Source: Macrostomum lignano
Taxonomy: Eukaryota
DNA: 64,000 nucleotides
Assembly (NCBI GenBank): GCA_002269645.1
Contig: NIVC01003411.1
Span: forward strand, 35,333 to 99,332
Direction: 5' to 3'
Shown: positions 2,928-52,015 of the stretch, piece after piece
How positions within the stretch are numbered: position 1 is the first letter of the stretch
How the letters are laid out: each line of letters opens with the position of its first letter
The notes under the pieces: generated by a model
What the model was told of the DNA's origin: nothing
Databases searched by the model: none
The model's input: only the letters and a program-made list of their open reading frames with translations
Translations under genes and position numbers: made by a program

Positions 2928-5738
2928 CTACCACAATTTGGGATATTCGTCCGGTAGCAAAGAATAATTCCGACAGGTGGGACACACTGAGCACTCCTGA
3001 AACCAGCGACGAATACAGGCGTCGTGAAACAGGTGATCACAGTCTAGCCGGCGCACCTGTTCCTTCTGCGGGTTCAAGCTGTCCAGACAGACAATGCAGG
3101 TGTCCTCTTCGGCGCTGCCAGAAACAGTTGCTGAAGTTCTGCTGGCATTGCTTCCGTTTAACTTGTAGGCAGCACCGCCATTGGACTGTTGCTGCTGTCT
3201 ATGCCGAAGGTGCTGCTGCTTAGCCTGATGCTTATCGATCAGAATATTAATTAATTGTTGCTCAATTTGAGCACCAGGCCTGACGGTCATGCTGGCTAAG
3301 GCCTGACTAACCTGATCAACTGTCACGTACGGCAGTATCTGAAATGAAGCAAATTTTTAAATCGTGCAAAAGTTTTTCAATGTCGAAGCTCTCCGACATG
3401 TACTCCATCATATCGTAGTAAGATGCTCAAATTTATTATGCCAAATTGAAAATCACCGAGGTTTGGACAGCTGGCATCAGTCAAAAAGTTCGAAATCAAA
3501 TAAAATATCTTTAATATCGCTGAGCCTCTCTGCAGCAGAAGCTGCAGAACTCTCCAGACTCCATGTTTACAGGGTGCTCAAATTTGACTATTGTTAGAGG
3601 TCTTGAATTCTAATAATTAAAAAATTATTGACATTTAAAAAACGTGGCTCAGCCCCAATTTTGAATTTTACTGGCTGTTCCTTGGGTACACATTGTTCCA
3701 CCACGCTATCAAAGCCTCAATATCATTCCTAGCAATTCTTAGAAACTACAAATTTCATAATGTAGAAAACAGCTTTGCCACGAATTTCGCTTGCTTGTGA
3801 TGCAATCCACTAGCATCACCAAGAATTTAACTTGGGCCTTTACCGCAGATACTAGAAAAACTAGATAAGATGGGCCACTCAGCACATTTGCGTGTAAGCT
3901 ACTTTCAGTTCAGTAGTAAGTTAAACAGAAGCATTTTAATGTATTTTAAAGCCCAGGCTCATTTATTGGCTCTTACATCCCCCTCCCCAAGCTTAAACCC
4001 TCTAACCGCGGCCTTTCCACGCTACCCCCGCCCCCCCCTAATTTTTATTGCCTTTCTCGGAGTTCCAGCCTAAAGTTGCCATGTACATTTCAGTGAACTG
4101 GCTAATGTACATTATGGCTGAACCAATTAGCAAGTTGTTTACGCCTAGAAGTTGGGCTTCTAAACTTATTAAAGTCAGCTGCCTTTATTTTTATAAAATA
4201 GCTTATGTATTCTTCTTTGCTACTGAACTGAAAGTAGAAAGCAATTTTACCAAGTATATATGCCTGAGTGGCATATCTATAGTTATTTTAGTATCTGTGG
4301 TCTTAACTCACGAAAATTTTATTAAGCTTCAGAGGAAATGCTATAGTGACTGTACAAGGTCAAAACCTAAATTTAGTTTATACAAAAAATTCTTTCTTTA
4401 TTTGTTGCCTCTACAAAGAGGGGGGAGGGCGCAGATTGCTAGCCTCGGTGCTAAATATTTTCCTACCTTTTGCACCACAGGCATGTACTTTAGTGCGCCT
4501 CTCTGCTGCTCGGTCAGATCTCCATGAGCGCTGGCAGTCGTGCCGGCTCGCGGACCAATTGGACCAGGCAGGCTGTTGCAAGGCAAGCTGACGTTAACTG
4601 ATCTCGGCCGAGCAGCCGGAGTCGCGGCCTGTGGCGGCTGCAATGAAGGCGGTGGCGGCGGCGGCATCTGCTGCTGCTGCTGCTGCTGTTTAGCAGTTTC
4701 CGCCTCGAGCTTCAGCGCTTTTAGGTCTGGCTTTCGCGGCGAGCGAGGCACCAATTTTTGGAATTGAGTCTTCACGTTGGCCGCCTTGAATTCTTCTTGC
4801 GTGTCAAGTTTGGACCTGGGCGCAAACAGAAAAAGAAGATTTGAAGCTATTTGATATTTCAGTGCACAATCAGAGCAACTGCTTTTAATTTGGCCGCATA
4901 AAAGTTAAAGCCATTCTTTATTCACCCATCCCATCCGGTCACTACGTTTTTCGCCTATGGGCACAAGTTGTGGCTGGATTAATAATGTACAAAGTGTTAA
5001 AAATGCTCAGATATTTAAGAAAAGTGTATGAGAATAAAAAAAGAAAAATAACAACAAAAAAGATAATATTGAGCAGGATCCTTCGTGCAGTAGTCGTATC
5101 TCCGACACTTCATATCTCCGACAAGCTTAACCCTAACTCCAAGCTTAAGCTTTAACTCTAACGGAGATATGAAGTTTCGGGGACATGAAACCCCTTTATT
5201 GGCATGGCTGTTACTTAATAGTGCCATCACCGACGGCATGACTGAGTCAGGTGACTCAGCGAAGTGGTCTTGCTTAATTGATATAGCTCGTACATAAAAA
5301 TAAGTATTTTCTAAGCGCGAAATAACTCAATACTTAGATTTCTGGGCCAAACACTTACCGGCAGTCGGTGCGCAGCTGTTTTAGCGCGATCCGGCTCTGA
5401 TCTAGTTCGGTGCAAAACTCAACCCAGATTTGCTCAGCCGCTGTTAGCGCAGCCGTATGAATAGCTCCAGCCGCCGCCTCATTTAACGATGCTATAACAG
5501 CTCTGGCGTCATTTTCGCGCTCCTTAACCATGCTCATAGCTAGCAGATAGTGCAGATCGACTACCTCGCTTTTAAATTCTTTAGAGGCTTCAGCAGACTC
5601 GGCGCAGGCCAACGAAAACGCGTCGCGTTGTTGTCGCAGAGCGTCATTCTCTCGACGCAATGTGGCAACTTGATCGCGCAAACTATCGGTCTCGTTCTTT
5701 AATAGGTTTATAGGGCATCGCGGCGAACAGGGCTGCAT
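2928..5738 (-). CDS. Coiled-coil / Pro-Gln-rich / C-terminal RING-H2 E3 ubiquitin ligase, 3 exons, 379 aa
   Basis: Exons 5738-5359, 4815-4467, 3338-2928. GT-AG junctions have matching phases (2, 0), total 1140 nt. RING-H2: CIVC...CDHLFHDAC...CPTC followed by LLPDEYPKL, which resembles the DZIP3/TTC3 tail. An in-frame TAA directly precedes the ATG. Confidence 0.85.
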
Positions 5739-7501: not shown

Positions 7502-10500
7502 TTAACAGTTGCAGCCGCTGTTTGCCTGCTTGTCGCGGCCGTCCTGCAGACGAGTGCCTGCGAACAACAGAATAAAAGCACAAGAGTTGATTCTAAAACT
7601 ATGCACACTTGTTTGCATGTGGCTCATACATGCGCAACAGTCGGCCGAGTCGGCCGATCCGGCCGACCGATTTGGCGGCCAACCAAGGAAGTCGCAAAAA
7701 TGCCCACCCGAAAAAATAACCAAGTAGTAGTGCTAAGTAGCTGACGAGGCATTTTGGCTTAATAAGACAGTCATAGTTACTCCTGCCGTTTACCCAAAGT
7801 TGCGTTTATTTGCTTTAGGGTTTTTTTACATGTAAGTCGCATTTTTGGCCAAAAACTACGTCGCATTTTTGTTAAAACTAAGTCGCATGGCCGACCGAAT
7901 TTCGGAGGTTGCGCATGTATGATGTGGCTACTATGAGTACTAGATATATGCTGAATCTTAAGTTTGCAATTCACTAGCCCGATGATGCTAACTAAAACAA
8001 AAAACTGTTGGATTTATGCATCAATGTGCACTATATTAGCGTTAGCGCTTATTGGTGTTAGCTAAAAGTACAATTTATGTTGAATCGTGTCTCAAACTCA
8101 AAGTACACAAGCCTATTGATGATATCTAAAAGTGCAAGAGGATTAATTCCATCTAAAAGTACACTAGACTGATGGTGATAAGCTAAAAGTGCACGAGAGA
8201 ATTAAATTCATTTAAAAGTACACTAGACTGACGGTGATAAGCTAAAATGGCACGAGAGAATGAAATTCATTTAAAAGTACACTAGACTGACGGTGATAAG
8301 CTAAAAGTGCACGAGAGAATGAAATTCATTTAAAAGTACACTAGACTGACGGTGATAAGCTAAAATGGCACGAGAGGATGAAATTCATTTAAAAGTACAC
8401 TAGACTGATGGCGATAAGCTAAAAGTGCACGAGAGAATGAAATTCATATAAAAGTATATAAGCTTGCTGATTAATAGCTAAAAGTGCGCGAGAGAATGAA
8501 CTTCAATCTAAAAGTAAACTAGCCTGCTGATGATAGCTAAAAGTGCAGATGCTAAACGAAATCTTACTCACCGGCCCCGGCAGCCAAATTAGGATCGCAC
8601 TCCAGCGATTCGGCCATCTTGTCGCAGATGACGTCAACCAGTCGTTCGAATACGGCTTTGACGTTGATATTCTCTTTAGCGGAAGTCTCAAAGAACTCGA
8701 GGCCTGCAAATATTTCAGCAATGATAAAATATACTCATTTTTAATTGAAATGTCGGGATATTTTTACTAGATAGTTTATTAGAAAAACACTGCTGATTAA
8801 AAAATTTAAGAAATGTTATAATATTAATTCACACTAAATAGTTCCGACATTTTAGGCCATATTAGCAGTTACGAGGAGGATCTCAAATATAAGAATTTCA
8901 ACATTTACCAATCTCTTCAGCCAATCGTTGGCAGCTTAATTCGCTAATAACTCGATAGTCAGCTAGATCGCACTTGTTGCCAACCAGAACTATGGTGGCA
9001 TCGTGCCAAGCGTGGGCTCTGATCTGAGTACACCTTTAGAATAATAGTCAGTAATAAGTATCTTTTAACAACAGATAACATTCCAAGAGAAATAGAAAAA
9101 TACGCTTAGGGATATTAGAAAACAAATGCATTAAATTCACTAAGCAATATAGGAAATGCACAGCACTTACTCCTAACTCATTTCATGCATCAGTTGCATA
9201 GGAGTGACATTTAATTTTGCTCCTAGCATATAAATCGACAGAATAAGACTTATTTAACAATGGATTTCAGTGGAACAGAGTTCAAGCGTGGCAGCTCCGA
9301 GAGGGAGATCACAGTTGGGAGAATCCCGGAGGAGGAATCCCTAAAGAGGAATCTCTACAGGAGACTCCCTAAAAGGGGAATCCCGAAAGGGGAATTCTAA
9401 AAGGGAATCCCTAAAGTGGAATCCTTAAAGGGGAATCCCTAAAGGGGAATCCCTAAAGGGGAATCCCTAAAGGGGAATCCCTAAAGGGGAATCCCTAAAG
9501 GGGAATCCCTAAAGGGGAATCCCTAAAGGGGAATCCCTAAAGGGGAATCCCTAAAGGGGAATCCCTAAAGGGGAATCCCTAAAGGGGAATCCCTAAAGGG
9601 GAATCCCTAAAGGGGAATCCCTAAAGGGGAATCCCTAAAGGGGAATCCCTAAAGGGGAATCCCTAAAGGGGAATCCCTAAAGGGGAATCCCTAAAGGGGA
9701 ATCCCTAAAGGGGAATCCCTAAAGGGGAATCCCTAAAGGGGAATCCCTATAGGGGAATCCCTAAAGGGGAATCTCTAAAGGGGAATCCCTAAAGGGGAAT
9801 CCCTAAAGGGGAATCTCTAAAGGGGAATCCCTAAATGGGAATCCCTAAAGGGGAATCGCTAGAGGGACATTTTTAAATCAAAATCAGAAAGGGGGAATCC
9901 AAAGGGGAATCTATAAAGTGGAGTCCTAACTAAAAATCTCTAAGGATTTTCTCCACAGGAATTTCCATATATCCGGATAAGAGACCTTAGCAGGGGAATC
10001 GCAAATAAAGAACTTTTCAAATGTTTTTCTCGAATCGCCACCGTACAATATATAATAAGAAAACACAAATACGGTATATAAACACTTATCTTGTGTTCAA
10101 TGCCATTTTCCGCAAGAAATTGTATCTTTTACACAAAAGTAGAATAGAAGAAGCACAAAAGATTGAAAAACATTAATCACTAATAAAAAGATGGCAATGA
10201 AGCAAGTGAACTGCGGTACAATACCCAGATCATGTGCCAGCCTAGCACCGCGCTCAATGGAGACAATGCGACTATCCTCTAAATCGCACTTGTTACCAAT
10301 TAGAGCAATTTTGGCTGTGGACCAGGAGTGAGTCTGTATTGCCGTCACCCTGGGCATGGTAGCGATGCGTATGAGAGGCACCTTTGTTTTAAATAAAACA
10401 CATGTAATAGAAATAAAATCTAAAACGACGAATCCAGTTTTTTAGAAAAAAGGCAAAAAACCATCAAAGAAATAATCTGTTGAACAGCAGGAATACCAAT

Positions 10501-13500
10501 TTGTACTGTTTATACCGACATATACTCAGCAAGTTTCAATTCCTCGGAATTCAAAATGCTATTTCAAGATATTCCAATGGGATGTCTATCAAAATCATCA
10601 GCGCGGAATCCTCACTCAAATCACGCTTTGGTAGTTGGTACCTTCACTCTTAACTGTTGACTATCAAACTTTAATAAAAAGAACAGTCCAAACAAATTCA
10701 CCGAACCGGAATAAAGAAAAAAGTTAATCGAGGAAGAAAAACTACGCTCGTAATTTGAACCAAAAAACACCGGGATTTTTAGGGCTTAGAAATTCGCACC
10801 GAGCTCATTTGCCAGCTTTTGCGCCGTTTTGGTGTCGACTCGGCGCTGACCTGGCTGGCAGTCGCACTTGTTGCCTACCAATACAACAACGGCACCTTGC
10901 CAGGCCTGACCGCGCACCAGCGTCACCCTTTAGTTGTGTGTGCGTGTGCGGTTTTAGAAGACGCAGGTGGTTGGGGTTGAAGTAAACTAATAAACTGTAG
11001 ACTAAAGCAAACTCTAGCCCCGACTTCATGTGGACCAGCCGGCAATATCTTGTCATAGCAAGATCTGTGTATCCCAGCCCTACCCCCACCCCAAGTTAAA
11101 ATAAAAGGGGACAAGATTCTATGTACACATGTACACTAGCCCTACCCCACCCCATATAAAAGGAACGAGATTCTATGTACGCCAGCCCTACCCCCACCCC
11201 AAATAAAAGGGGACGAGATTTTATTTACATCAGCCCTACCCTCAAATAAAAGGGGACGAGATTCTATGTACGCCAGCCCTGTCCCAGGACGAGAATCTAT
11301 GTACCGCCAGCCCTCACCCTGGCCCTCAGATAGATAGATACCGTGAAGGGGACAAGATTTCACATACGCTCGTACATTTTATTAATTTTAGCTAGGGAGA
11401 CTAGGGAGAAGAAAGCCAAGAGATAAAGAAATCAGACGCTACGAAGTTAACTCCAGCTAAATTTGCATACAAGGAAAACAAGGGTAAAATTTAGATTGAC
11501 ACAAGGGAAACAAATTTCAAAATATATGAATAGTGATATCAGTTACAAAAAATAAGTTGCTTTAATATGGTTCCTGCTATATTTTATATTTCCTATAAAT
11601 TTTAAATTGTAATAATAAAGTGCAATGACAACACTGAACATATATAAAAGGTCGGTGTGCACAGGAGCGACAATAAAAGATGCATACAGACACTAATAAA
11701 ATATTGTACCTTAGTACTCATATTTTAATACAAGCGACTTACCAGTCTTGCACGGCATTAAACGAATCCTCGTTGGTAACGTCGTACATTAGAATAAAGC
11801 CCATAGCGCCCCTATAATAGGCTGTGGTGATGGTTCGGTACCTCTCTTGACCAGCTGTGTCCTAAAAAGTAGTAACAGAAAACGCTATTTATACTACTCA
11901 TTTTTACTGAAACGATTTTTAATATAGTTTGTTGCAATTTGCGTCCATTTTGCTATTTTTAAGTTTCGTACGATTCTTAGCTCAAGTTCGGAGATCATGC
12001 TTCGGGGCGGATCCGGAGTGATAAAGGAGTGATTCTCAGTAGATAGATTGGTAGTGATTCTCAGACTCAGGGGAAGATCGGGAGTGATTCTTAGTCGGCG
12101 GATTAGGAGTGATTCTCAACATCAAGGTAAGATCAGAAGTGATTCTCAGTGGACGGATCGAGAATGATTATTGCGTGGCGAATCAGGAGTGGTTCTTAGT
12201 GGGCGGAGATCATAGGTGATTCCCAGGGAGAGATCAAGCGTGATTCTAGGGGCAGATCAGGGGTGATTGTCAGGGCGGATCAGGAGTGATTCTCATGGCG
12301 GATCAGGAGTGATTCTCTGGGCGGATCATGGGTGATTTTATGGCGGATGAGGGGTGATTCTCAGACGGGATCAGGGGTGATTCTCATGGCGAATCAAGAG
12401 TGATTCTCAGGGTGGATCATAGGTGATTTTATGGCGGATGAGGGGTGATTCTCAGCGTGGATCAGGGGTGATTCTCGGGCCGGATCAGGGGTGATTCTCA
12501 GGCCGAATCGGGGTGATTCTCGGGCCGGATCAGGGGTGATTCTCGGGCCGGATCAGGGGTGATTCTAGGGGCGGATCAGGGGTGATTCTAGGGGCGGATC
12601 AGGGGTGATTCTCGGAGCGGATCAGGGGTGATTGTTATGTACAAATAAGAATCATTATGAAACAGCGCTTTGCAACTTTGATTTTGATGTGACGGACCTT
12701 CCGGATCTGACTGCACCATGAAAGCAAGAATGCAAGTAGTTGCAAAGGCTAAGCAGAGTTTGAAATTGACCTGTCGATATAAATTAATAAACCGACCGGG
12801 TCCCGGAGGGCCAATTACTTTGTCGGGTTGAGACGCACAGGAAGTTGCGTCCCAGTGGCAGCGAAATTGATTGCCGCTAGTGGACAAGTTGATAGTCGAT
12901 TCTATCAAACACGCGACAGTCGCACACGCAAAGGATTTAAGCTAATCTAACGGAATGCATAATAACCTTCAGTGGTTTTGATTATCAGTTGTATGAATTA
13001 TTGCCTTAAGAATAAATTAATACAATAGATTGTTACTAATTATAAACTTCACTCATCATTTTTAGAGTCGTGGAATTAACATATAGGAAATAGATTGAGC
13101 GAGATAAAATGAGGAGATATAAGATTCATGATAGGCATAAGGAGAAGATTGACAGAAACAAGGGAAACATGTAAGAGTATAAAAGAGGGCGTGATACATG
13201 GGTTCTAAGATACAGAAGTTTTAGAATACACTAAGGGTCGAGGGATATACAGATAGGTCATAGGAGACACAGATGGGTCATAGAAGACACAGATAGGTCA
13301 TAGGAGATACAAAAGGGTCATGGAAGACACAGATAAGTCATAGGAGACACAGATGGGTCATGAGGGACACAGATAGGTCGTATGAGACACAAAAGGGTCA
13401 TAAGAGACACAGAAAGGTCATAGGAGACACAGATGGGTCATAGAAGACACAGATAGGTCATAGGAGACACATATAGGCCATAGAAGACACAAAAGGGTCA

Positions 13501-14277
13501 TAGGAGACACATATAGGTAATAGAAGACACAAAAGGGTCAGGAGACACAGATGGGTCATAGAAGAAACAAATAGGCCATAGAAGACACAGAAGGGTCATA
13601 GGAGACACAGATAGGTCATAGAAGACACAGAAGGGTCATAGAAGACACAGATAGGTCATAGAAGACACAAAAGGGTCATAGGAGACCCTGAGTGTCATAG
13701 AAGAAACAGAATGGTCATAGGAGACACAGATAGGCCATAGAAGACACAGAAGGGTCATAGGAGACACAGATAGGTAATAGAAGACACAAAAGGGTTATAG
13801 AAGACACAAAAGGGTCATAGAAGACACAGATGGGTCATAGAAGAAACATATAGGCCATAGAAAACACAGAAGGGTCATAGGAGACACAGATAGGTCATAG
13901 AAGACACAGAAGGGTCATAGGAGACACAGATAGGTCATAGAAGACACAGAAGGGTCATAGGAGACTGGGAGTCATTGAGTACACACGGCGAGTCATGACA
14001 AGCGGTTATTGGGGGAGTGGGAGATGTGACCAGAAGCCAGTGAGAGATGAGGCAATAAAGAGAAGCTACTCACCCAGATCTGCAGCTTGACCCGCTTATC
14101 GTGTCTAAAGACGGTCTTGACTTTGAAATCGATGCCAACAGTGGACACGAAGGCGGACGTGAAAGAGTCGTCAGCGTAGCGAAACAGAAACGACGTCTTG
14201 CCAACGGAGGAATTGCCAATAATCAATAATTTGAACATGTAGTCAAAGTTCTGATCGGCCGCATCGCGAGATCCCAT
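7502..14277 (-). CDS. RAB3: Rab3 GTPase, 5 coding-exon positions with 3 alternative versions of exon 3 (211-212 aa)
   Basis: Exon 1 14277-14074 ([55 protein letters not shown]...QIW). Exon 2 11861-11743 ([27 protein letters not shown]). Exon 3a/b/c. Exon 4 8703-8572 ([33 protein letters not shown]). Exon 5 7557-7502 (ends in the CNC prenylation motif). All junctions are GT-AG with consistent phase. Confidence 0.95.
7625..7921. mobile_element. Non-autonomous hAT-type MITE (297 bp) in the last Rab3 intron
   Basis: Perfect 14-bp TIR CATACATGCGCAAC/GTTGCGCATGTATG; exact 8-bp TSD ATGTGGCT at 7617-7624 and 7922-7929. Confidence 0.9.
8150..8545. repeat. 59-bp minisatellite, about 6-7 copies
   Basis: Unit taagctaaaagtgcacgagagaatgaaattcatttaaaagtacactagactgacggtga. 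Confidence 0.9.
8909..9033 (-). CDS. RAB3: Rab3 alternative exon 3c (125 nt)
   Basis: ttctaaag|G TGT ACT...ATT G|gtaaat; encodes (W)[41 protein letters not shown](G); phase 2/1. Confidence 0.88.
9340..9925. repeat. 14-bp minisatellite (GGGGAATCCCTAAA)n, about 30 near-perfect copies plus degenerate flanks
   Basis: Visible tandem array between Rab3 exons 3b and 3c. Confidence 0.95.
10225..10349 (-). CDS. RAB3: Rab3 alternative exon 3b (125 nt)
   Basis: cag|G GTG ACG...CTG G|gtattg; encodes (W)[41 protein letters not shown](G); phase 2/1. Confidence 0.88.
10800..10927 (-). CDS. RAB3: Rab3 alternative exon 3a (128 nt)
   Basis: aag|G GTG ACG...CTC G|gtgcga; encodes (W)[42 protein letters not shown](G); phase 2 in, phase 1 out. 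Confidence 0.8.
11060..11310. repeat. About 47-bp degenerate tandem repeat
   Basis: Recurrent ccagccctacccccaccccaaataaaaggggacgagattctatgtac. Confidence 0.8.
12020..12630. repeat. About 21-bp degenerate minisatellite
   Basis: Recurrent ggcggatcaggggtgattctc. Confidence 0.85.
13245..13965. repeat. About 20-bp minisatellite
   Basis: Recurrent gggtcataggagacacagaa / ggtcatagaagacacagata. Confidence 0.9.
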
Positions 14278-17099: not shown

Positions 17100-18555
17100 C
17101 CAGCTGCTCCAGCCTCCCATTCATTCAGTGAGCTGCTGCCCCAGCCTCCCATTCATTCAGTGAGCTGCTGCCCCAGCCTCCCATTCATTCAGTGAGCTGC
17201 TGCCCCAGCCTCCCATTCATTCAGTGAGCTGCTGCCCCAGCCTCCCATTCATTCAGTGAGCTGCTGCCCCAGCCTCCCATTCATTCAGTGAGCTGCTGCC
17301 CCAGCCTCCCATTCATTCAGTGAGCTGCTGCCCCAGCCTCCCATTCATTCAGTGAGCTGCTGCCCCAGCCTCCCATTCATTCAGTGAGCTGCTGTCTCAG
17401 CCTCCCATTCATTCAGTGAGCTGCTGCTCCAGCCTCCCATTCATTCAGTGAGCTGCTGTCTCAGCCTCCCATTCATTCAGTGAGCTGCTGTCTCAGCCTC
17501 CCATTCATTCAGTGAGCTGCTGTCTCAGCCTCCCATTCATTCAGTGAGCTGCTGCCCCAGCCTCCCATTCATTTAGTGAGCTGCTGTCTCAACCTCCCAT
17601 TCATTCCGTGAGCTGCTGTCTCAACCTCCCATTCATTCAGTGAGCTGCTACCCCAGCCTCCCATTCATTCAGTGAGCTGCTGTCTCAACCTCCCATTCAT
17701 TCAGTGAGCTGCTGCCCCAGCCTCCCATTCATTCAGTGAGCTGCTGTCTCAACCTCCCATTCATTCCGTGAGCTGCTGTCTCAGCCTCCCATTCATTCCG
17801 TGAGCTGCTGTCTCAACCTCCCATTCATTCAGTGAGCTGCTGTCTCAACCTCCCATTCATTCAGTGAGCTGCTGTCTCAACCTCCCATTCATTCAGTGAG
17901 CTGCTGCCCCAGCCTCCCATTCATTCAGTGAGCTGCTGCCCCAGCCTCCCATTCATTCAGTGAGCTGCTGTCTCAACCTCCCATTCATTCAGTGAGCTGC
18001 TGTCTCAGCCTCCCATTCATTCAGTGAGCTGCTGTCTCAGCCTCCCATTCATTCCGTGAGCTGCTGTCTCAACCTCCCATTCATTCCGTGAGCTGCTGTC
18101 TCAGCCTCCCATTCATTCAGTGAGCTGCTGTCTCAGCCTCCCATTCATTCAGTGAGCTGCTGTCTCAACCTCCCATTCATTCAGTGAGCTGCTGTCTCAA
18201 CCTCCCATTCATTCAGTGAGCTGCTGTCTCAGCCTCCCATTCATTCAGTGAGCTGCTGTCTCAGCCTCCCATTCATTCCGTGAGCTGCTGTCTCAACCTC
18301 CCATTCATTCCGTGAGCTGCTGTCTCAGCCTCCCATTCATTCAGTGAGCTGCTGTCTCAGCATCCCATTCATTCAGTGAGCTGCTGTCTCAGCCTCCCAT
18401 TCATTCAGTGAGCTGCTGTCTCAGCCTCCCATTCATTCAGTGAGCTGCTGTCTCAGCCTCCCATTCATTCAGTGAGCTGCTGTCTCAGCCTCCCATTCAT
18501 TCAGTGAGCTGCTGTCTCAGCCTCCCATTCATTCAGTGAGCTGCTGTCCCAACCT
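17100..18555. repeat. 32-bp satellite, about 45 copies
   Basis: Unit agcctcccattcattcagtgagctgctg(cccc/tctc). Confidence 0.95.
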
Positions 18556-18894
18556 CTCATCCCTATATAGTCTAAGTTAATCAAAGCCTTTTTAGTCTCA
18601 TTTACTCATGACAATAAATAAATTTAAATACAACACACAAACAAAAAATTTAACGCAGGGAAATAGCATAAGATAGCATATGTAAAACATAAAATAAATT
18701 AGACGATAAATGGTTTGAAAAATGACATACAATGCAACTAGAATCAGCAGTCAGACAAAGTCGCCGTGTCACCTCTTGTATGGAGAGCTGGAATGATATC
18801 TGCAAATAAAGCGTACGAATAGTCGGTCCCCGTTAGCTTATAATTGTATGGCCTGCTTGTATCGCTAGGATGTCGTTAGAATGCACATCCCAGC

Positions 18895-19290
18895 CATTTG
18901 ATGTTCGCCGCTACCCCAGCACAATCTCAGTCCTTTGATGTTCGCCGCTACCCCAGCTCAATCTCAGTCCTTTGATGTTCGCCGCTACCCCAGATCAATC
19001 TCAGTCCTTTGATGTTCGCCGCTACCCCAGCACAATCTCAGTCCTTTGATGTTCGCCGCTACCCCAGCACAATCTCAGTCCTTTGATGTTCGCCGCTACC
19101 CCAGCACAATCTCAGTCCTTTGATGTTCGCCGCTACCCCAGCACAATCTCAGTACTTTGATTTTCGCCGCTACCCCAGCACAATCTCAGTCCTTTGATGT
19201 TCGCCGCTACCCCAGCACAATCTCAGTACTTTGATTTTTGCCGCTAACCCAGCCTAATCTTTGTCCTTTGAAATTCACCGCATACCTCAG
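18895..19290. repeat. 37-bp minisatellite, about 10 copies, just downstream of the CLK stop
   Basis: Unit tttgatgttcgccgctaccccagcacaatctcagtcc. Confidence 0.9.
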
Positions 19291-19323
19291 CCCAAGCCCA
19301 GGAACAGATATTAGCAGAAAGAT

Positions 19324-22300
19324 TTACCGATGCGACCGCAGGTGCTGCGGCAGGGCCTCAAAGAACGGATGATGAATAGCTTCGCCTAGTGGTGCCCGAC
19401 GCCTTGGCTCGTACTCGAACAGATCCTCCAGCAGATCGAATAGCAGCCGATGCTCCCGACTATCCGGCAGCTGGGTGTAGCGCCGCAACGGTTGCACGGC
19501 CGTCTCGGCGCCGCCCCATTTCCAGGCCAGCCGGCCCCTATGAAAATATTTTGTCTTTGGCGACGCTTCAATCATGCGAGTTGGCAGCCGGCCAAAGCAG
19601 CGCTCCATCATGGCCAGGTGCTCTAAATTGTCGTGCGTCATGAACAGGCACTCGCCGGTGTACAGCTCGAACACTATGCAGGCGATGGACCAGACGTCGC
19701 ACGGATGCGACCAGCCTAGTTCCAGCACCACTTCGGGGGCGCGGTAGTGCCGGGTGGACACGATCTTGGTGTGGTGCTCGTGATCGAATGTGGCCGAGCC
19801 GAAGTCGATAAGACGAATTGTGGGATCGCGGAGCACGGTGCGCTAGGTAGAGGATGGGGGATAGCAAGATTGCGCTTATAACTGGGAATTGGATTATGGG
19901 AATTACAACTGTCGCTTTAAACCGGGCCAGTGTTCAAAGCCCTTGCGAGTAATATTAATAACTAAAACAAAACAGTAAGAATGCGTCAAATGACTCTATG
20001 AGAACCTGACGATGGACCAAATGACTCATATGAGGACCTGACGATGGACCAAATGACTCATAAGAGGACATGCTGATAGACCAAATGACTAATATGAGCA
20101 CCTGACGATGGACCAAATGACTCATATGAGGACCTGACGATGGACCAAATGACTCATATGAGGACCTGACGATGGACCAAATGACTCATAAGAGGACATG
20201 CTGATAGACCAAATGATACATATGAGGACATGGTGATAGACCAAATGACTCATATGACCTGACGATGGACCAAATGACTCATATGAGCTGGACATGGTGA
20301 TGGACCAAATGACTCATTTGAGGATCTAATGATGGACCAAATGACTCATATGAGGATCTAATGATGGACCGAATGACTCATATGAGCTGGACATGGTGAT
20401 GGACCAAATGACTCATATGAGGATCTAATGATGGACCAAATGACTCATATGAGGATCTAATGATGGACCAAATGACTCATATGAGGATCTAATGATGGAC
20501 CAAATGACTCATATGAGGATCTAATGATGGACCAAATGACTCATCTGAGGACCTGACGATGGACCAAATGAGGACACGCTGATAGACCAAATGAATCAAG
20601 AGGACATGATGGTGGACAAAATCACTGATAAGAGGACATGGTGATGGACTAAATGAATCAAGAGGACATGATGGTGGACAAAATCACTGATAAGAGGACA
20701 TGGTGATGGACTAAATGACTCATATGGGGCACTGCTGATGGACCAAAAGACCAACATTCTAGCGCCAATAACTCACCACTCGTCCAGTCTTGGGGCAGAC
20801 ATCGCGAACGCAATCGTTGGAGTTGCAGAACAAAATATTCTCGGGCTTCAAATCTGTGTGCGTCAGTCCGCAGTCGTGCAAAAATTTCACAGCGTAAGAC
20901 AGCTGATAGGCCATGCTGCGCACCTGTTCAAACGGATACGGCGCGTAGTCGTTTCGCTTTTGAAAGTCGAACACTGACTCGCCGAGCATGTCGAACACCA
21001 AACAGACGTGGCCATGGTAGTTAAAGTGCTGTCGCAGCTGTACGCAGTGAAATCGGCCGTGCGGATCGCGGCGCTCCAGCGTTTGCAGCACCTTCACCTC
21101 CAGCATGGCGGCGTCCCGGTACTTCGGCACGTTGCGAACCACCTGGAAAGTAGCGGGCGAGCCCGTGAAGGCAATTTCTAAAAAATAAAAAAACTGTTTC
21201 AGACTGACTACTGATAGTAGCTGAGTATGGGCATTACGATTATAAGCATACGACGTCCTAAAAAACCAGGAAGGTTATTAATATTAAACTAGATGATTCT
21301 GGGAAGCTGGCCCAGCAACTGATGATCTGGGAGGCCGGCGGGTTGCCCTTCAGCAACTGAGGATCTGGGAGGCTGCCGGGTTGCCCTTCAGCAACTGAGG
21401 ATCTGGGAGGCTGCCGGGTTGCCCTTCAGCAACTGAGGATCTGGGAGGCTGCCGGGTTGCCCTTCAGCAACTGAGGATCTGGGAGGCTGCCGGGTTGCCC
21501 TTCAGCAACTGACGATCTGGGAGGCTGCCGGGTTGCCCTTCAGCAACTGAGGATCTGAGAGGCTGCCGGGTTGCCCTTCAGCAACTGAGGATCTGAGAGG
21601 CTGCCGGGTTGCCCCAGCAACTGAGGATCTGAGAGGCTGCCGGGTTTCCCCAGCAACTGAGGATCTGAGAGGCTGGTGTGCTGAGCCTTACCTTAATAGC
21701 CACTCGTTCATTGCCCGCGCGCCTGTCGGCGGCCTCCAGCACCCGACCGAAGGTGCCCTCGCCAAGCAGGCGTACCAGGGTGTACTGGCCGGAGCGCATG
21801 CTGGCGCCTGGCTGCACTACCAAATGGCCGTCGCGGTCCTGCTGTACAAAGGACCGGGACCGGGACCGGGATCTGCGACTGCTGCTAGCCGGCGAGTCGT
21901 GACGCGACTGATGCTGCTGCAGTGGCGGCTGATAATAACGGCGTCGACTTCTAAAATTTTAAAGGTGATCAGATTGGCTTAAAGCATACAAGGTAATTGA
22001 ATTGAACAGTGTTTATATAGCACTGACAGTACTGTGAATTAAATTACAAAAAATGACTTATAGCAAAGAAGTGGACTGGTAGCTATCTACTGAAGTAATG
22101 ACTGGTAGCTATCTACTAAGTAATGATTGGCAGCTATCTACTAACGGAACACTAAATTATTGATAAGCCATACTCCCTGCAATTCACCTGTAATGCGACC
22201 TAGTTACCACGGACTCAGTGCGCGAGCTGTACCCATCTTGAATGCGACGCGACGATCCGCCTCTAGATCGGGACCGGGATCTGGATGCTCTCGATTTTGC

Positions 22301-22840
22301 TCTACGTCGATGCGGCGACCGCTTACGCTGCCGACGCTGCCGGCTGTAGCTCTGGTGCCGGCTTCGCTGCCGACGTCGGTACCGCGAGGAGCTGCGCTCT
22401 CGCCGGCTTCGATCTCGCGAAGTCGCCAATGACTGCCTTGCCGAACAGCCTGACTGAGTAGACGACGAAGGCGAGGAGGAGGAGCGCCTTCTGTGTCTGG
22501 CGGCGGACTCGCGCTGGGCTGAACGGCCGCGATAGGCGGGATTTCGGCGGGACCGCCGACTCGACCGGGAGCGGTAGCGCGACCGGCCGTCGGACCGGGA
22601 CGGCGACCGGAATCGGGACCGGGACCGAGACTTAGATCGGGACTCGTCGCTGTAGCTGTCTTGACGCCGGCTCTGCTCAACGGATCGTATCGAATGATGC
22701 GGCATAGAGGAAGGCGGCGGCCGCGGAGGTGTGAACTGCTGCTGTCTGTACGAGGCTAAAACGCCGTAATCCGCTAAGCCGCCCGAGTGTTGCTGGCCGT
22801 AGCAGTACATCCGTGACGGAGTCGACTGACATGCAAGCAT
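19324..22840 (-). CDS. CLK: CLK/LAMMER dual-specificity kinase (Doa-like), 4 coding exons, about 598 aa
   Basis: Exons 22840-22188 (RS-rich), 21950-21692 ([19 protein letters not shown]), 21142-20777 ([12 protein letters not shown]) and 19842-19324 ([25 protein letters not shown]). GT-AG phases 2, 0, 0; total 1797 nt. The start codon choice (22840 vs 22810 or an upstream exon) is uncertain. Confidence 0.93.
20000..20745. repeat. About 32-bp minisatellite in CLK intron 3
   Basis: Recurrent gatggaccaaatgactcatatgaggacctgac. Confidence 0.9.
21300..21675. repeat. 38-bp minisatellite in CLK intron 2
   Basis: Unit gggaggctgccgggttgcccttcagcaactgaggatct. Confidence 0.9.
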
Positions 22841-29800: not shown

Positions 29801-30489
29801 TCTGCCCACATTTTCATTGGCTGGCGTCTTTTCATCTCTCTCTCGCGTGGGCTAGTCCAATCATGTGTCTCGCCGCTGAGGCACCTGATTGACTAGCATT
29901 CCCTTTCTTCTCTCTCGCCCTTCAACTCTGTGATTTTTGCCCCCACCCCCCAGCCCTGCGTGGCTAAGCCCTCCCAGTCCCCTGCACAGTGCTCACCCAG
30001 TATTTATATGCGCGCGCGGCTCTCGCCCTCCCTGCTCTCTCTCTCTCACTCTAGCCCTACGCGTGCTTAAGTGAAAGTGAAGATTCAACTAGAAGTACAT
30101 TCAACTGAAGCTGAAAATATTAGAGGCCACGCCTGCATGAGCGCGACAAGTGACCCAGCCCGGTAAGACGCAGTGTTCGCTTTCGTTAATTTGTATCGTC
30201 TCCATTACTCACTTCTGTCGCCACCGTCTTCCTTCGGGTCTGCGAAGTATCTATACGCCTCCAGACCCGTGCTCACCTCTGCCGCTGCTGAGTGGTTACC
30301 TGCTCACAGCCTCCTCATCTGCATCCCCCTCTCTCCGTGGGGCTGGCCGAGTGTCTGTACGCTCCCAGCCTCTCCACTTCCACCTCGAAGTGTCCGTGCG
30401 CCTCGGGGTCGCCACTCTCTCGCCTATCGCACCCGGCAAGCTCTGGACAGTCCAGTACCCGAACCCTTGATCGCCCCATCTGCGGTCCG

Positions 30490-32230
30490 CACGGACGGAA
30501 GCAGAAAATACAACACGACCGGCTCAGCGAGAGCAGCCGGTATGGCAAGACGACCCCGCGAAAGACTCCGTTTGAGCAGGCGACCAACCCGCGAGGCAGA
30601 GGAGGCCTTGGCGGCTGTCTATCTGCAGCGCCAGCAGGCTGCTGTTAATGACGCCATTCGGGCCGTCTCTGCCGCTGGGCCCGATGCCAGAGGCCGCGTG
30701 GCCTGGTCGGCTATCAATGCTCTGACGGGGCGAAAGCGGCGCATTCCACTCAACCTGTCAGGTGACTCTGCGGACGAGCGCAGGAACGCGCTGCGTGAGT
30801 TCTTCGCCGCCATTGTCAACGCGCCGCCACCCCCGCTGCCAGACAGCCTAACGCTGCCGCCGGAGATGCCATTGCCGGCAGAGGAGAGCTTCAGCCTAGC
30901 ACCAGTCAGCACAGCCAACGTTGTGAGGCTCGCCCAACAGTTACCGGGCGGGAAAGCGCTGGGTCCGGACGAGGTGCCCATCGAGGCGCTACGCATCCAC
31001 TGTGTGGCTAGTGGGGCCGCCAGAGTGATGAATCGCGTGCTCTTCGGTGAGGAGGCACCCAACGAATGGACCACGGCGCACATCGTCGCAGTTCCTAAGA
31101 AGCCGGGCACCACGAGGCTTGAGGAGCATCGAGGTATCTGCCTTCAGTCCTGCGCTGCGAAGTTGTTCAACCGGATGCTGTTATCGCGGTTGCAGCCCGT
31201 GTTGGATCCGTACCTGCGCCATGAGCAGAACGGCTTCCGGCCCCATCGCGGCACAGTGACGCTGATCCTAGCTCTTCGTCGAGTCATCGAGGAAGCACGG
31301 ATACGCCAGTCGATCCTGATTGTTATCTTCATAGATTTCAAGAAGGCATTCGACTCGGTCGTCAGGTCTGTGCTTCCAAAGGTGCACCGTGCGTACAACG
31401 TGCCAGAGCAGCTGATTTCCGCCATCATGGCGATCTACCGTGATACGAAAGCTGCTATTTTAACACCGGACAGCCTATCGGACTTCTTTGAGACATCCAG
31501 GGAGATACGCTTGCGCCGTTCCTGATCGTTCTGGTGCTTGACTGGGAACTGCGGACTGCTCTTCCTACAAACGACGACGGCTTTCTGTTGCGGCGACGCG
31601 TGGGTCGACGTCAACCGGAGAGGCGGCTCAGCGTGCTTGGCTACGCTGACGACCTCGCCCTGCTGTCCTTAACTGTTGAGGGCGCCCAACGACAACTGGA
31701 CAAGCTATTTGCTGTTGCGGCGAGTGTCGGCCTGGTGGTCAACACGCAAAAGACCGTCGTGCTCTGCGTGCCGGACGACATCGAGGCAGCGATTTTGTGC
31801 CGAGGCGCTGATGAACAGGCGACAGAGCTTCCGCGTCGGCGTCCGCGAGGATTTGCGGCGTCGCCGCGGGCTTGCCTGGGCTGCCTTTCGTTCTGTGAGG
31901 GCAGTCCTGCAGTCCGAGGCCTTACCTGACCGCCAGTGGGCGGCGTTGTTCCAACGCGGCTCTGTATCGCCGCGCTGGCCTGGTCCGTCCAAGCGACCTG
32001 CTGCGCCGTCGGCGACTCCAGCTGGCAGGCCACATCATCCGCGCCGAGTCGTACTGCCCAGAGCCGGTGCAGGAGGTGCTGCTGCTAACGCTGCAGGCAC
32101 CCTACCGGCGGGGACAGGCGCGCACTCGGCGTTTCGTCGACGGCCTGCTGACTGACGCCGGCGCCCCGGATTCGGCCGGCGGCGTGGCGTTCATTCGCGA
32201 CCTGGCCTTGAAGCGCGCCCTGTGACGCTA
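30490..32230 (+). mobile_element. RTE-like non-LTR retrotransposon reverse transcriptase, 5'-truncated and frameshifted
   Basis: ORF 30173-31525 has RGICLQSCAAKLFNRMLLSR, EQNGFRPHR and FIDFKKAFDSV. The QGDTLAPFL motif is broken by a deletion near 31500. ORF 31534-31929 has GYADDLALL. No endonuclease domain seen. Confidence 0.9.

Positions 32231-34603: not shown

Positions 34604-52015
<17,412 letters not shown>

Follow-up and report, generated by a model that had tools for sequence, protein, structure and literature searches.

A 64,000-nucleotide stretch of the genome of the free-living flatworm Macrostomum lignano (contig NIVC01003411.1, positions 35,333 to 99,332 of the forward strand; hereafter the window) contains a complete Rab3-like gene in which one internal exon is present in three successive copies, designated 3a, 3b and 3c. 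The features of these copies make it probable that they constitute three tandem-duplicated alternative exons of the M. lignano Rab3 gene, exactly one of which is included in each productive mRNA. A gene of this kind would encode up to three Rab3 proteins of 211-212 amino acids with the same P-loop, both switch regions, RabCDR1, RabCDR3 and CxC tail. Differences among the isoforms would be located in the C-terminal portion of alpha3, in the alpha3/beta5 loop (RabCDR2/RabSF3), in the loop between beta5 and alpha4 and on the exposed side of alpha4, and all isoforms would preserve the core and nucleotide-contact residues of the segment (the loop Trp, the beta5 hydrophobic residues, GNKCD and the alpha4 pattern L-A-x-x-L/I-G).

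A Rab3 gene with a divergent RabCDR2

The gene lies on the minus strand at 7.5-14.3 kb of the window. Translation of this strand defined seven exon candidates (Table 1), and the product ends in ..SGCNC, followed by a stop codon. In a search against solved structures, the product matched Rab3C (351 bits), fly Rab3 (339 bits), Rab3B (339 bits) and the Rab3A chain of the rabphilin complex 1ZBD (315 bits), compared with 216 bits for Rab8A and 205 bits for Rab27A. Together with the CNC end, these scores bear out an earlier reading of the same DNA, made from its letters alone (hereafter the first-pass annotation), which had described the protein outside the swapped segment as near-canonical Rab3.

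The G-domain motifs G1 (GxxxxGKT), G3 (DTAGQE), G4 (NKxD, in all three variable exons) and G5 (SAK, here SAKEN) were all found, and the DQNFDYMFK segment (RabSF1/RabCDR1) is the same as in Rab3C and invariant in the alignment of Rab3 sequences. The loop characteristic of Rab3-type RabSF3/RabCDR2, KTYSWDNAQ, is absent, with 3c reading RAHAWHDAT at this location. The departure from Rab3 is confined to this alpha3/beta5 loop, the P-loop, switch regions, DQNFDYMFK and CxC tail all being Rab3-like. Judged by its sequence, the gene is a Rab3 with a divergent CDR2, in which every remaining Rab3 feature is present.

Three exon copies and a reading frame that admits one

A tblastn search of the 64-kb window identified exactly three copies of the exon in the Rab3 gene, with E values of 1e-8 to 1e-15, and by this measure the similarity among the three exons is not due to chance. 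The sole other match in the window was weak (E = 2e-4) and corresponded to a neighbouring Rab-like GTPase at 1-443. This intronless gene was considered as a possible canonical Rab3 copy and rejected, as it encodes a different Rab-like protein. The same search revealed no relic of a canonical exon and no decayed fourth copy within the window, introns included. The first-pass annotation had located the three swapped exons at 8909-10927, a span whose limits coincide exactly with the 3' end of 3c and the 5' end of 3a, read on the minus strand.

The three copies, clustered within 2 kb, share their boundaries in full. Each is flanked by AG and GT, its first base completes the Trp codon of which exon 2 supplies the first two bases, and its last base is the first base of a Gly codon finished in exon 4, so that all copies enter in phase 2 and leave in phase 1. 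Because each of the three lengths (128, 125 and 125 nucleotides) is of the form 3n+2, the frame is kept only by single inclusion: a premature stop follows when exon 2 is joined directly to exon 4 or when two or all three copies are included, and including exactly one yields a protein of 211 or 212 residues. At a minimum, exclusivity is imposed by the reading frame, and mis-spliced mRNAs would be removed by nonsense-mediated decay. Two other mechanisms of exclusivity were considered and rejected. Steric hindrance is ruled out by the introns of 450 and 1191 nucleotides that separate the copies, and U2/U12 incompatibility by the splice sites themselves, all of which are GT-AG and none of which resembles a U12 donor.

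The translations of the three copies match the loop sequences quoted in the first-pass annotation, and agree with it that no version is canonical, IKTYSWDNAQ being present in none of the three exons. Exon 3a does have the inserted residue and the additional Cys behind NKCD (NKCDC) that had been noticed there. The accompanying statement that the Trp is kept and DNAQ lost in all three copies holds for the Trp; complete loss of DNAQ was an overstatement, since the Ala is kept in all three and 3c retains an Asp one position later. At the loop position of the canonical Tyr, 3b (THSW) and 3c (AHAW) have His and 3a has Gln. An alignment of the three exons with their relatives has invariant columns at the Trp, at one Leu of beta5, throughout G-N-K-C-D, at an Arg and, in alpha4, at a Leu and a Gly. 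The switch regions and CxC tail are encoded, like RabCDR1, by constant exons and hence remain fixed, as had been proposed.

The swapped segment in the context of the Rab fold

Alignment to Rab3 indicates that the variable exon encodes the final turns of alpha3, followed by the alpha3/beta5 loop (RabCDR2), beta5, the NKCD motif, the next loop and alpha4, in line with the first-pass assignment of the loop, NKCD and alpha4 to this exon. An AlphaFold2 model of the 3a isoform, built with 35 aligned Rab3 sequences, was of low confidence, with a mean predicted local distance difference test score of 42.7, too low for mapping the surface or searching for similar folds; the order of its secondary-structure elements, the only feature read from the model, is the same as in the alignment. 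In the general Rab fold, the invariant columns correspond to core or nucleotide-binding positions, and for this reason the differences among the three exons probably fall on the surface.

The first-pass annotation had offered effector binding or nucleotide kinetics as the property retuned by splicing. The NKCD motif is unchanged across 3a, 3b and 3c, and the exons therefore show no sign of altered nucleotide specificity; a change in nucleotide kinetics finds no support. For effector binding, the claim that the alpha3/beta5 loop is part of the RabCDR surface touching rabphilin is borne out by published work (PMC9308819, PMC4552854). In the complex of rabphilin with Rab3A, a second interface is built by the three RabCDRs, RabSF3 being RabCDR2 (PMC9308819), and residues WDN124-126 of fly Rab3, described as 'the majority of the alpha3-beta5 loop', were picked as rabphilin-contacting (PMC4552854). 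In Drosophila, Rab3 with these residues changed from WDN to AAA still rescues the rab3 active-zone phenotype at the neuromuscular junction, and active-zone composition is unaffected (PMC4552854); the loop is therefore dispensable for some Rab3 functions. Retuned effector recognition by exon choice is plausible, and its consequence would be isoform-specific recognition by partners of the RabCDR pocket, such as rabphilin-type effectors bearing an SGAWFF motif.

Evidence bearing on the use of exons 3a and 3b

The database protein PAA51520.1 (P0004) is identical, residue for residue, to the 3c isoform, apart from five extra N-terminal Ala residues arising from an open 5' end, and its locus on NIVC01003411.1 (GCA_002269645.1) corresponds to window positions 1-24292 at 100% identity. 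The 90% protein cluster to which it belongs has three members, the other two being the near-identical PAA74454.1, from a second locus, and the UniRef entry A0A1I8HI31; all of them use 3c. The UniRef entry (479 amino acids) joins Rab3 exons 1-4 to the downstream RING-finger gene, skipping the CxC exon, and represents read-through transcription or, alternatively, a wrongly joined model.

Two lines of evidence nonetheless argue that the remaining copies are more than relics. The three exons have only 51-54% of their nucleotides in common and are hence old, but second codon positions (59-68% identity) are better conserved than third positions (34-46%), and each copy keeps its AG/GT boundaries and phase as well as the codons for the Trp, for the hydrophobic pattern of beta5, for GNKCD and for the L-A-x-x-L-G of alpha4. 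In addition, exon 3a is unchanged (0/128 differences) at the second M. lignano locus (L002, NIVC01000946.1:132347-158848), whereas its flanks of 300 nucleotides on either side differ at 20 of 551 positions (3.6%). At that rate some 4.6 differences would be expected in the exon, and the chance of finding none is about 0.009. Introns at the second locus diverge by about 2% from those of the window. Its neighbouring genes are the same, with the order kinase, Rab3, RING protein and Rab-like GTPase shared with window positions 1-24592 at 93-98% DNA identity; by its sequence, the second locus represents either a divergent haplotype or the outcome of a recent block duplication. From the evidence as a whole, we consider it likely that productive use is made of 3a, of 3b or of both.

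Exon 3c presents two mismatches in 125 positions with respect to the second locus, of which one changes Cys to Gly in alpha4 and the other is synonymous. The 3c isoform of that locus differs from that of the window in this Gly for Cys, in Glu for Asp and in having one Ser fewer in its tail. Exon 3b shows 0/125 mismatches and is located inside a tract of about 700 nucleotides (9775-10477) with zero differences, the neighbouring intron differing by 1.5-3.6%. Gene conversion or a constrained intronic element are possible explanations for this tract.

Several observations weigh against productive use of all three copies. There is no transcript or protein support for 3a or 3b, and the three database models all carry 3c. 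When the full 3a isoform was used as query, the best full-length match was again the 3c isoform PAA51520.1, at 89%, and the 3a and 3b peptides, used by themselves as queries, gave 41 candidates, the best at 41 bits, with no protein containing 3a or 3b in the collection searched. A run-derived copy of the 3c isoform is likewise missing from this collection, so the missing 3a and 3b proteins carry little weight and speak of a lack of data rather than of expression. The splice sites of 3a and 3b are the weakest in the gene: their donors match GTRAGT at 4/6 and 3/6 positions, compared with 5/6 for 3c and 6/6 for the constitutive exons, and the acceptor tract of 3a is poor and CA-rich, with pyrimidines at 7 of 15 positions. 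The comparison with the second locus is uninformative for 3b, because the surrounding tract is itself devoid of differences, and has low power in general, the two loci differing by only about 2% overall. Finally, some arthropod clusters of mutually exclusive exons, such as Dscam exon 6 and 14-3-3zeta, operate through docking/selector RNA pairing. They resemble the arrangement proposed here in having tandem homologous exons of which one is chosen, but no docking/selector pairing above background was detected in the Macrostomum gene, where duplex energies gave z scores of -0.8 to +1.3 relative to shuffles. A scan for inverted repeats identified thirteen AT-rich instances of 12-26 nucleotides without a consistent pattern, the comparison locus being, at about 98% identity, too similar for covariation.

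The 3c-only models, the missing 3a and 3b proteins and the weak splice sites would be accommodated if only 3c were used and 3a and 3b were unused relics, or pseudo-exons, open by chance, as would be the case for about 13% of random 42-codon frames, (61/64)^42. Yet the copies are old and have kept their splice dinucleotides, phase and coding pattern, their codon positions have not decayed evenly, and 3a is unaltered amid diverging flanks. We deem this explanation unlikely. Another proposal is that the extra exons are mainly regulatory, the inclusion of zero or two copies generating degraded premature-stop mRNAs that tune the level of Rab3. Every non-single combination does lead to an early stop, and the weak splice sites of the variable exons would permit leakage. 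A purely regulatory exon, however, needs neither GNKCD nor core residues nor a codon-position pattern, and the protein sequence of the alternative exon is conserved in molluscs, in a brachiopod and in a bryozoan (see below), making this proposal very improbable.

Weak splice sites are also usual for regulated alternative exons. In a gene with three alternative exons, the choice among them would be regulated, as suggested by the fact that all three donors are weaker than those of constitutive exons, and 3c, with the best sites, would be the apparent default.

A duplicated Rab3 exon across spiralians

The exon that varies in Macrostomum is also duplicated in other animals. Taxonomic counts given here derive from the best 120 Rab3 matches, which extend down to 338 bits, and the genomic loci compared in other species are single-model genes. 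An exon of the IKTHAWSNAS type (hereafter THAW-type) was found alone in 13 mollusc protein clusters from 12 named species, including a chiton, an abalone, a limpet, scallops, an oyster and a periwinkle. The models of the gastropods Batillaria and Nucella read erroneously through both copies, first IKTHAWSNAS and then IKTYSWDNAQ. The THAW-type exon is present as well in a sequencing-run contig among these matches, in Lingula (isoform X2) and in the bryozoan Watersipora, and a bdelloid rotifer has the loop IKTHSWEKTP. In public annotation, the alternative copies of molluscs, Lingula and Watersipora are listed as Rab-3 isoforms X1/X2/X3. Arthropod, vertebrate, tunicate, hemichordate and nematode matches have the canonical loop in nearly all cases, a few of them with single-residue changes.

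The genomic arrangement supports the same picture. In Batillaria, two 125-nucleotide copies are found 699 nucleotides apart, the alternative preceding the canonical, and in Adineta two 125-nucleotide copies lie 100 nucleotides apart, with the canonical first; in both genomes, AG/GT and phases are as in Macrostomum. A 4.2-kb contig from a sequencing run contains an uninterrupted frame of 219 codons that includes the alternative exon. Since genomic Rab3 genes have introns, this contig is taken to be mRNA-derived, which would imply that at least one bivalve-like animal produces mRNA containing the alternative exon. In the parasitic flatworms Spirometra and Echinostoma, a single copy, of canonical sequence, is located between exons 2 and 4. 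Both sequences were obtained from a profile search with the alternative exons, which returned only proteins of up to 123 residues, nearly all of them canonical.

As far as can be read from these genes and proteins, the exon pair is an old and widespread spiralian feature, and the Macrostomum cluster is a local version of it. Given that the pair is widespread in spiralians, the lack of a canonical version is, on the same grounds, a Macrostomum-specific loss or divergence. The order of the copies differs between gastropod and rotifer, and a single origin is therefore not established.

The relationships among exons are in keeping with considerable age. In pairwise comparisons, 3a, 3b and 3c have 16-20 of 42 residues in common, which is below the values for many outside exons; in the case of 3b, no outside exon compared has a lower value. 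Exons 3b and 3c share 26/42 and 25/42 residues with the alternative exon of Batillaria, and 3b shares 24-25/42 with canonical exons. In neighbour-joining analysis, 3a, 3b and 3c were grouped together in 0 of 300 bootstraps, and canonical exons formed a clade without them in 257/300; 3b adjoined this clade in 98/300, although with 42 sites and long branches these placements are weak. On sequence grounds, a recent triplication is ruled out, leaving two readings: all three copies may derive from the alternative type, or 3b may be a much-changed descendant of the canonical exon. The cluster would thus have its ancestry in an old spiralian pair made up of a canonical IKTYSWDNAQ exon and an IKTHAWSNAS-type exon. 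The canonical copy would have been lost in Macrostomum or would have diverged past recognition, with 3b as the best candidate, and three non-canonical versions would remain.

A further alternative, compatible with three alternatively used exons, would remove only the notion that Macrostomum has no canonical loop. It treats this locus as a specialised paralogue of Rab3 and posits that a separate canonical Rab3, resident elsewhere in the genome, performs the classical function. The canonical exons of Echinostoma and Spirometra and the recent large duplications in the M. lignano genome are in agreement with this possibility, and a paralogue scoring below 338 bits would escape the best 120 matches. 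Among those matches, however, the only M. lignano proteins are the products of this gene and of its near-identical copy; the neighbouring GTPase is not a Rab3, and the window is free of canonical exon relics. We view such a paralogue as possible, if somewhat doubtful.

Genomic surroundings

The features identified in the window are listed in Table 1. Minisatellite arrays occupy parts of the Rab3 introns and flanks at 9334-9866 (in the intron between 3b and 3c), 8100-8547, 12208-12633, 13249-13965, 17110-18560 and 18883-19295. Their units comprise GGAATCCCTAAAGG (38 copies), a 59-mer (7.6 copies), a 20/40-mer (36 copies), a 32-mer (45 copies) and a 37-mer (11 copies), and copy numbers differ between the paralogous loci, producing large alignment gaps. 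An 11-residue motif in the 603-residue kinase upstream of Rab3 resembles the LAMMER motif of CLK-type kinases. The reverse transcriptase frame at 30173-31525 is, by its sequence, probably a retroelement fragment, and the long open frames at 35060-36370 most likely arise from a simple repeat and only resemble coding sequence.

Table 1. Rab3 exons and other features of the window. Positions are those of the window; mismatches are relative to the second M. lignano locus (L002).
Feature	Position	Strand	Remarks
Rab3 exon 1 (coding, ATG to ..KLQIW)	14074..14277	-	RabCDR1 DQNFDYMFK, P-loop GNSSVGKT, switch I; donor gtgagt; identical to PAA51520.1; 0/204 mismatches
Rab3 exon 2	11743..11861	-	Switch II, start of alpha3; ends with TG of Trp codon; acceptor ttttag, donor gtaagt; 0/119 mismatches
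Rab3 variable exon 3a	10800..10927	-	128 nucleotides; one-codon insertion; most divergent copy; acceptor ctaaag, donor gtgcga; GC 0.61
Rab3 variable exon 3b	10225..10349	-	125 nucleotides; acceptor cccag, donor gtattg; most canonical-like alpha4
Rab3 variable exon 3c	8909..9033	-	125 nucleotides; acceptor ctaaag, donor gtaaat; exon of all annotated models
Rab3 exon 4	8572..8703	-	beta6, G5 SAK, alpha5, RabCDR3; acceptor tttgcag, donor gtgagt; 0/132 mismatches
Rab3 exon 5	7502..7557	-	CxC prenylation tail, stop; one substitution and a 3-nucleotide deletion in L002
Protein kinase gene, 603 residues, upstream of Rab3	18769-22828	-	Pfam Pkinase
RING-finger protein gene, 379 residues, downstream of Rab3	2928-5738	-	
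Rab-like GTPase, intronless, 225 residues	1-443, continuing past the window (L001 23850-24527)	-	Ends GCCS; GQKAD for GNKxD, DTAGHE for DTAGQE
Reverse transcriptase frame	30173-31525	+	Pfam RVT_1, E = 2e-12; GC 0.605 at 30-32 kb
Long open frames matching pentapeptide-repeat profiles	35060-36370	both	

Discussion

The release of synaptic vesicles and dense-core granules has Rab3 among its core regulators. Between flies and mammals the alpha3/beta5 loop of this protein hardly varies, and it lines the pocket by which rabphilin-type effectors discriminate among Rabs. The Macrostomum gene departs from other Rab3 genes in precisely this element, and several known systems provide a frame in which to interpret it.

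The closest parallel is the spiralian THAW-type exon, which affects the same exon of the same gene, has the same length of 125 nucleotides, the same phases and AG/GT boundaries, keeps the Trp and GNKCD while changing the loop and alpha4, and has His in place of the canonical Tyr, as do 3b and 3c. The species with the THAW-type exon, in contrast, have a canonical and a single alternative copy, whereas Macrostomum has three copies, none of them canonical, with Gln and an extra codon in 3a. Vertebrates also possess several Rab3 proteins with common switch regions (Rab3A/B/C/D), but have reached this diversity by gene duplication, and IKTYSWDNAQ is present in every sequence retrieved from them; in Macrostomum the diversity would arise by exon choice and is concentrated in precisely that loop.

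Alternative use of tandem exons is already known in Rab genes, RAB6A and RAB37 being the instances at hand, and what is unusual in Macrostomum is the presence of three copies, none with the canonical loop that almost every other bilaterian Rab3 sequence retrieved retains. The human isoforms RAB6A and RAB6A' are produced by a choice between duplicate exons (Echard et al. 2000, as cited in PMC3578815). As proposed for Macrostomum Rab3, tandem-duplicated exons are spliced alternatively and the isoforms differ only in part of the G domain, but the two exons of RAB6A are distinguished by three residues, as opposed to three exons with 16-20 of 42 residues in common and differences centred on RabCDR2. 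In the secretory Rab RAB37, homologous alternative exons keep the interior and alter a surface patch, for which a change of partner has been proposed (PMC8373072). This pattern of conserved core and variable surface is common to RAB37 and Macrostomum Rab3, although RAB37 is a different Rab and its event, unlike that of Macrostomum, has proteomic support. No paper on mutually exclusive Rab3 exons, or on a spiralian Rab3 exon pair, was found in open-access full text.

If only 3c were used, the locus would consist of a divergent Rab3 and two fossil exons. A broader proposal, which we put forward tentatively and with much less confidence than the three-exon gene itself, is that Macrostomum may be devoid of a YSWDNAQ-type Rab3 genome-wide, its regulated secretion relying on three splice-selected variants of the loop and alpha4, each for separate partners or cell types, and that an ancient, undescribed switch between canonical and THAW-type exons may operate across the Spiralia. 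Macrostomum lignano is a laboratory model flatworm, and exon-specific tests may be feasible in it. An exon that rewrites the alpha3/beta5 loop in several spiralian phyla, and that is present in three versions in a regenerating flatworm, would constitute a natural experiment on the purpose of RabCDR2.

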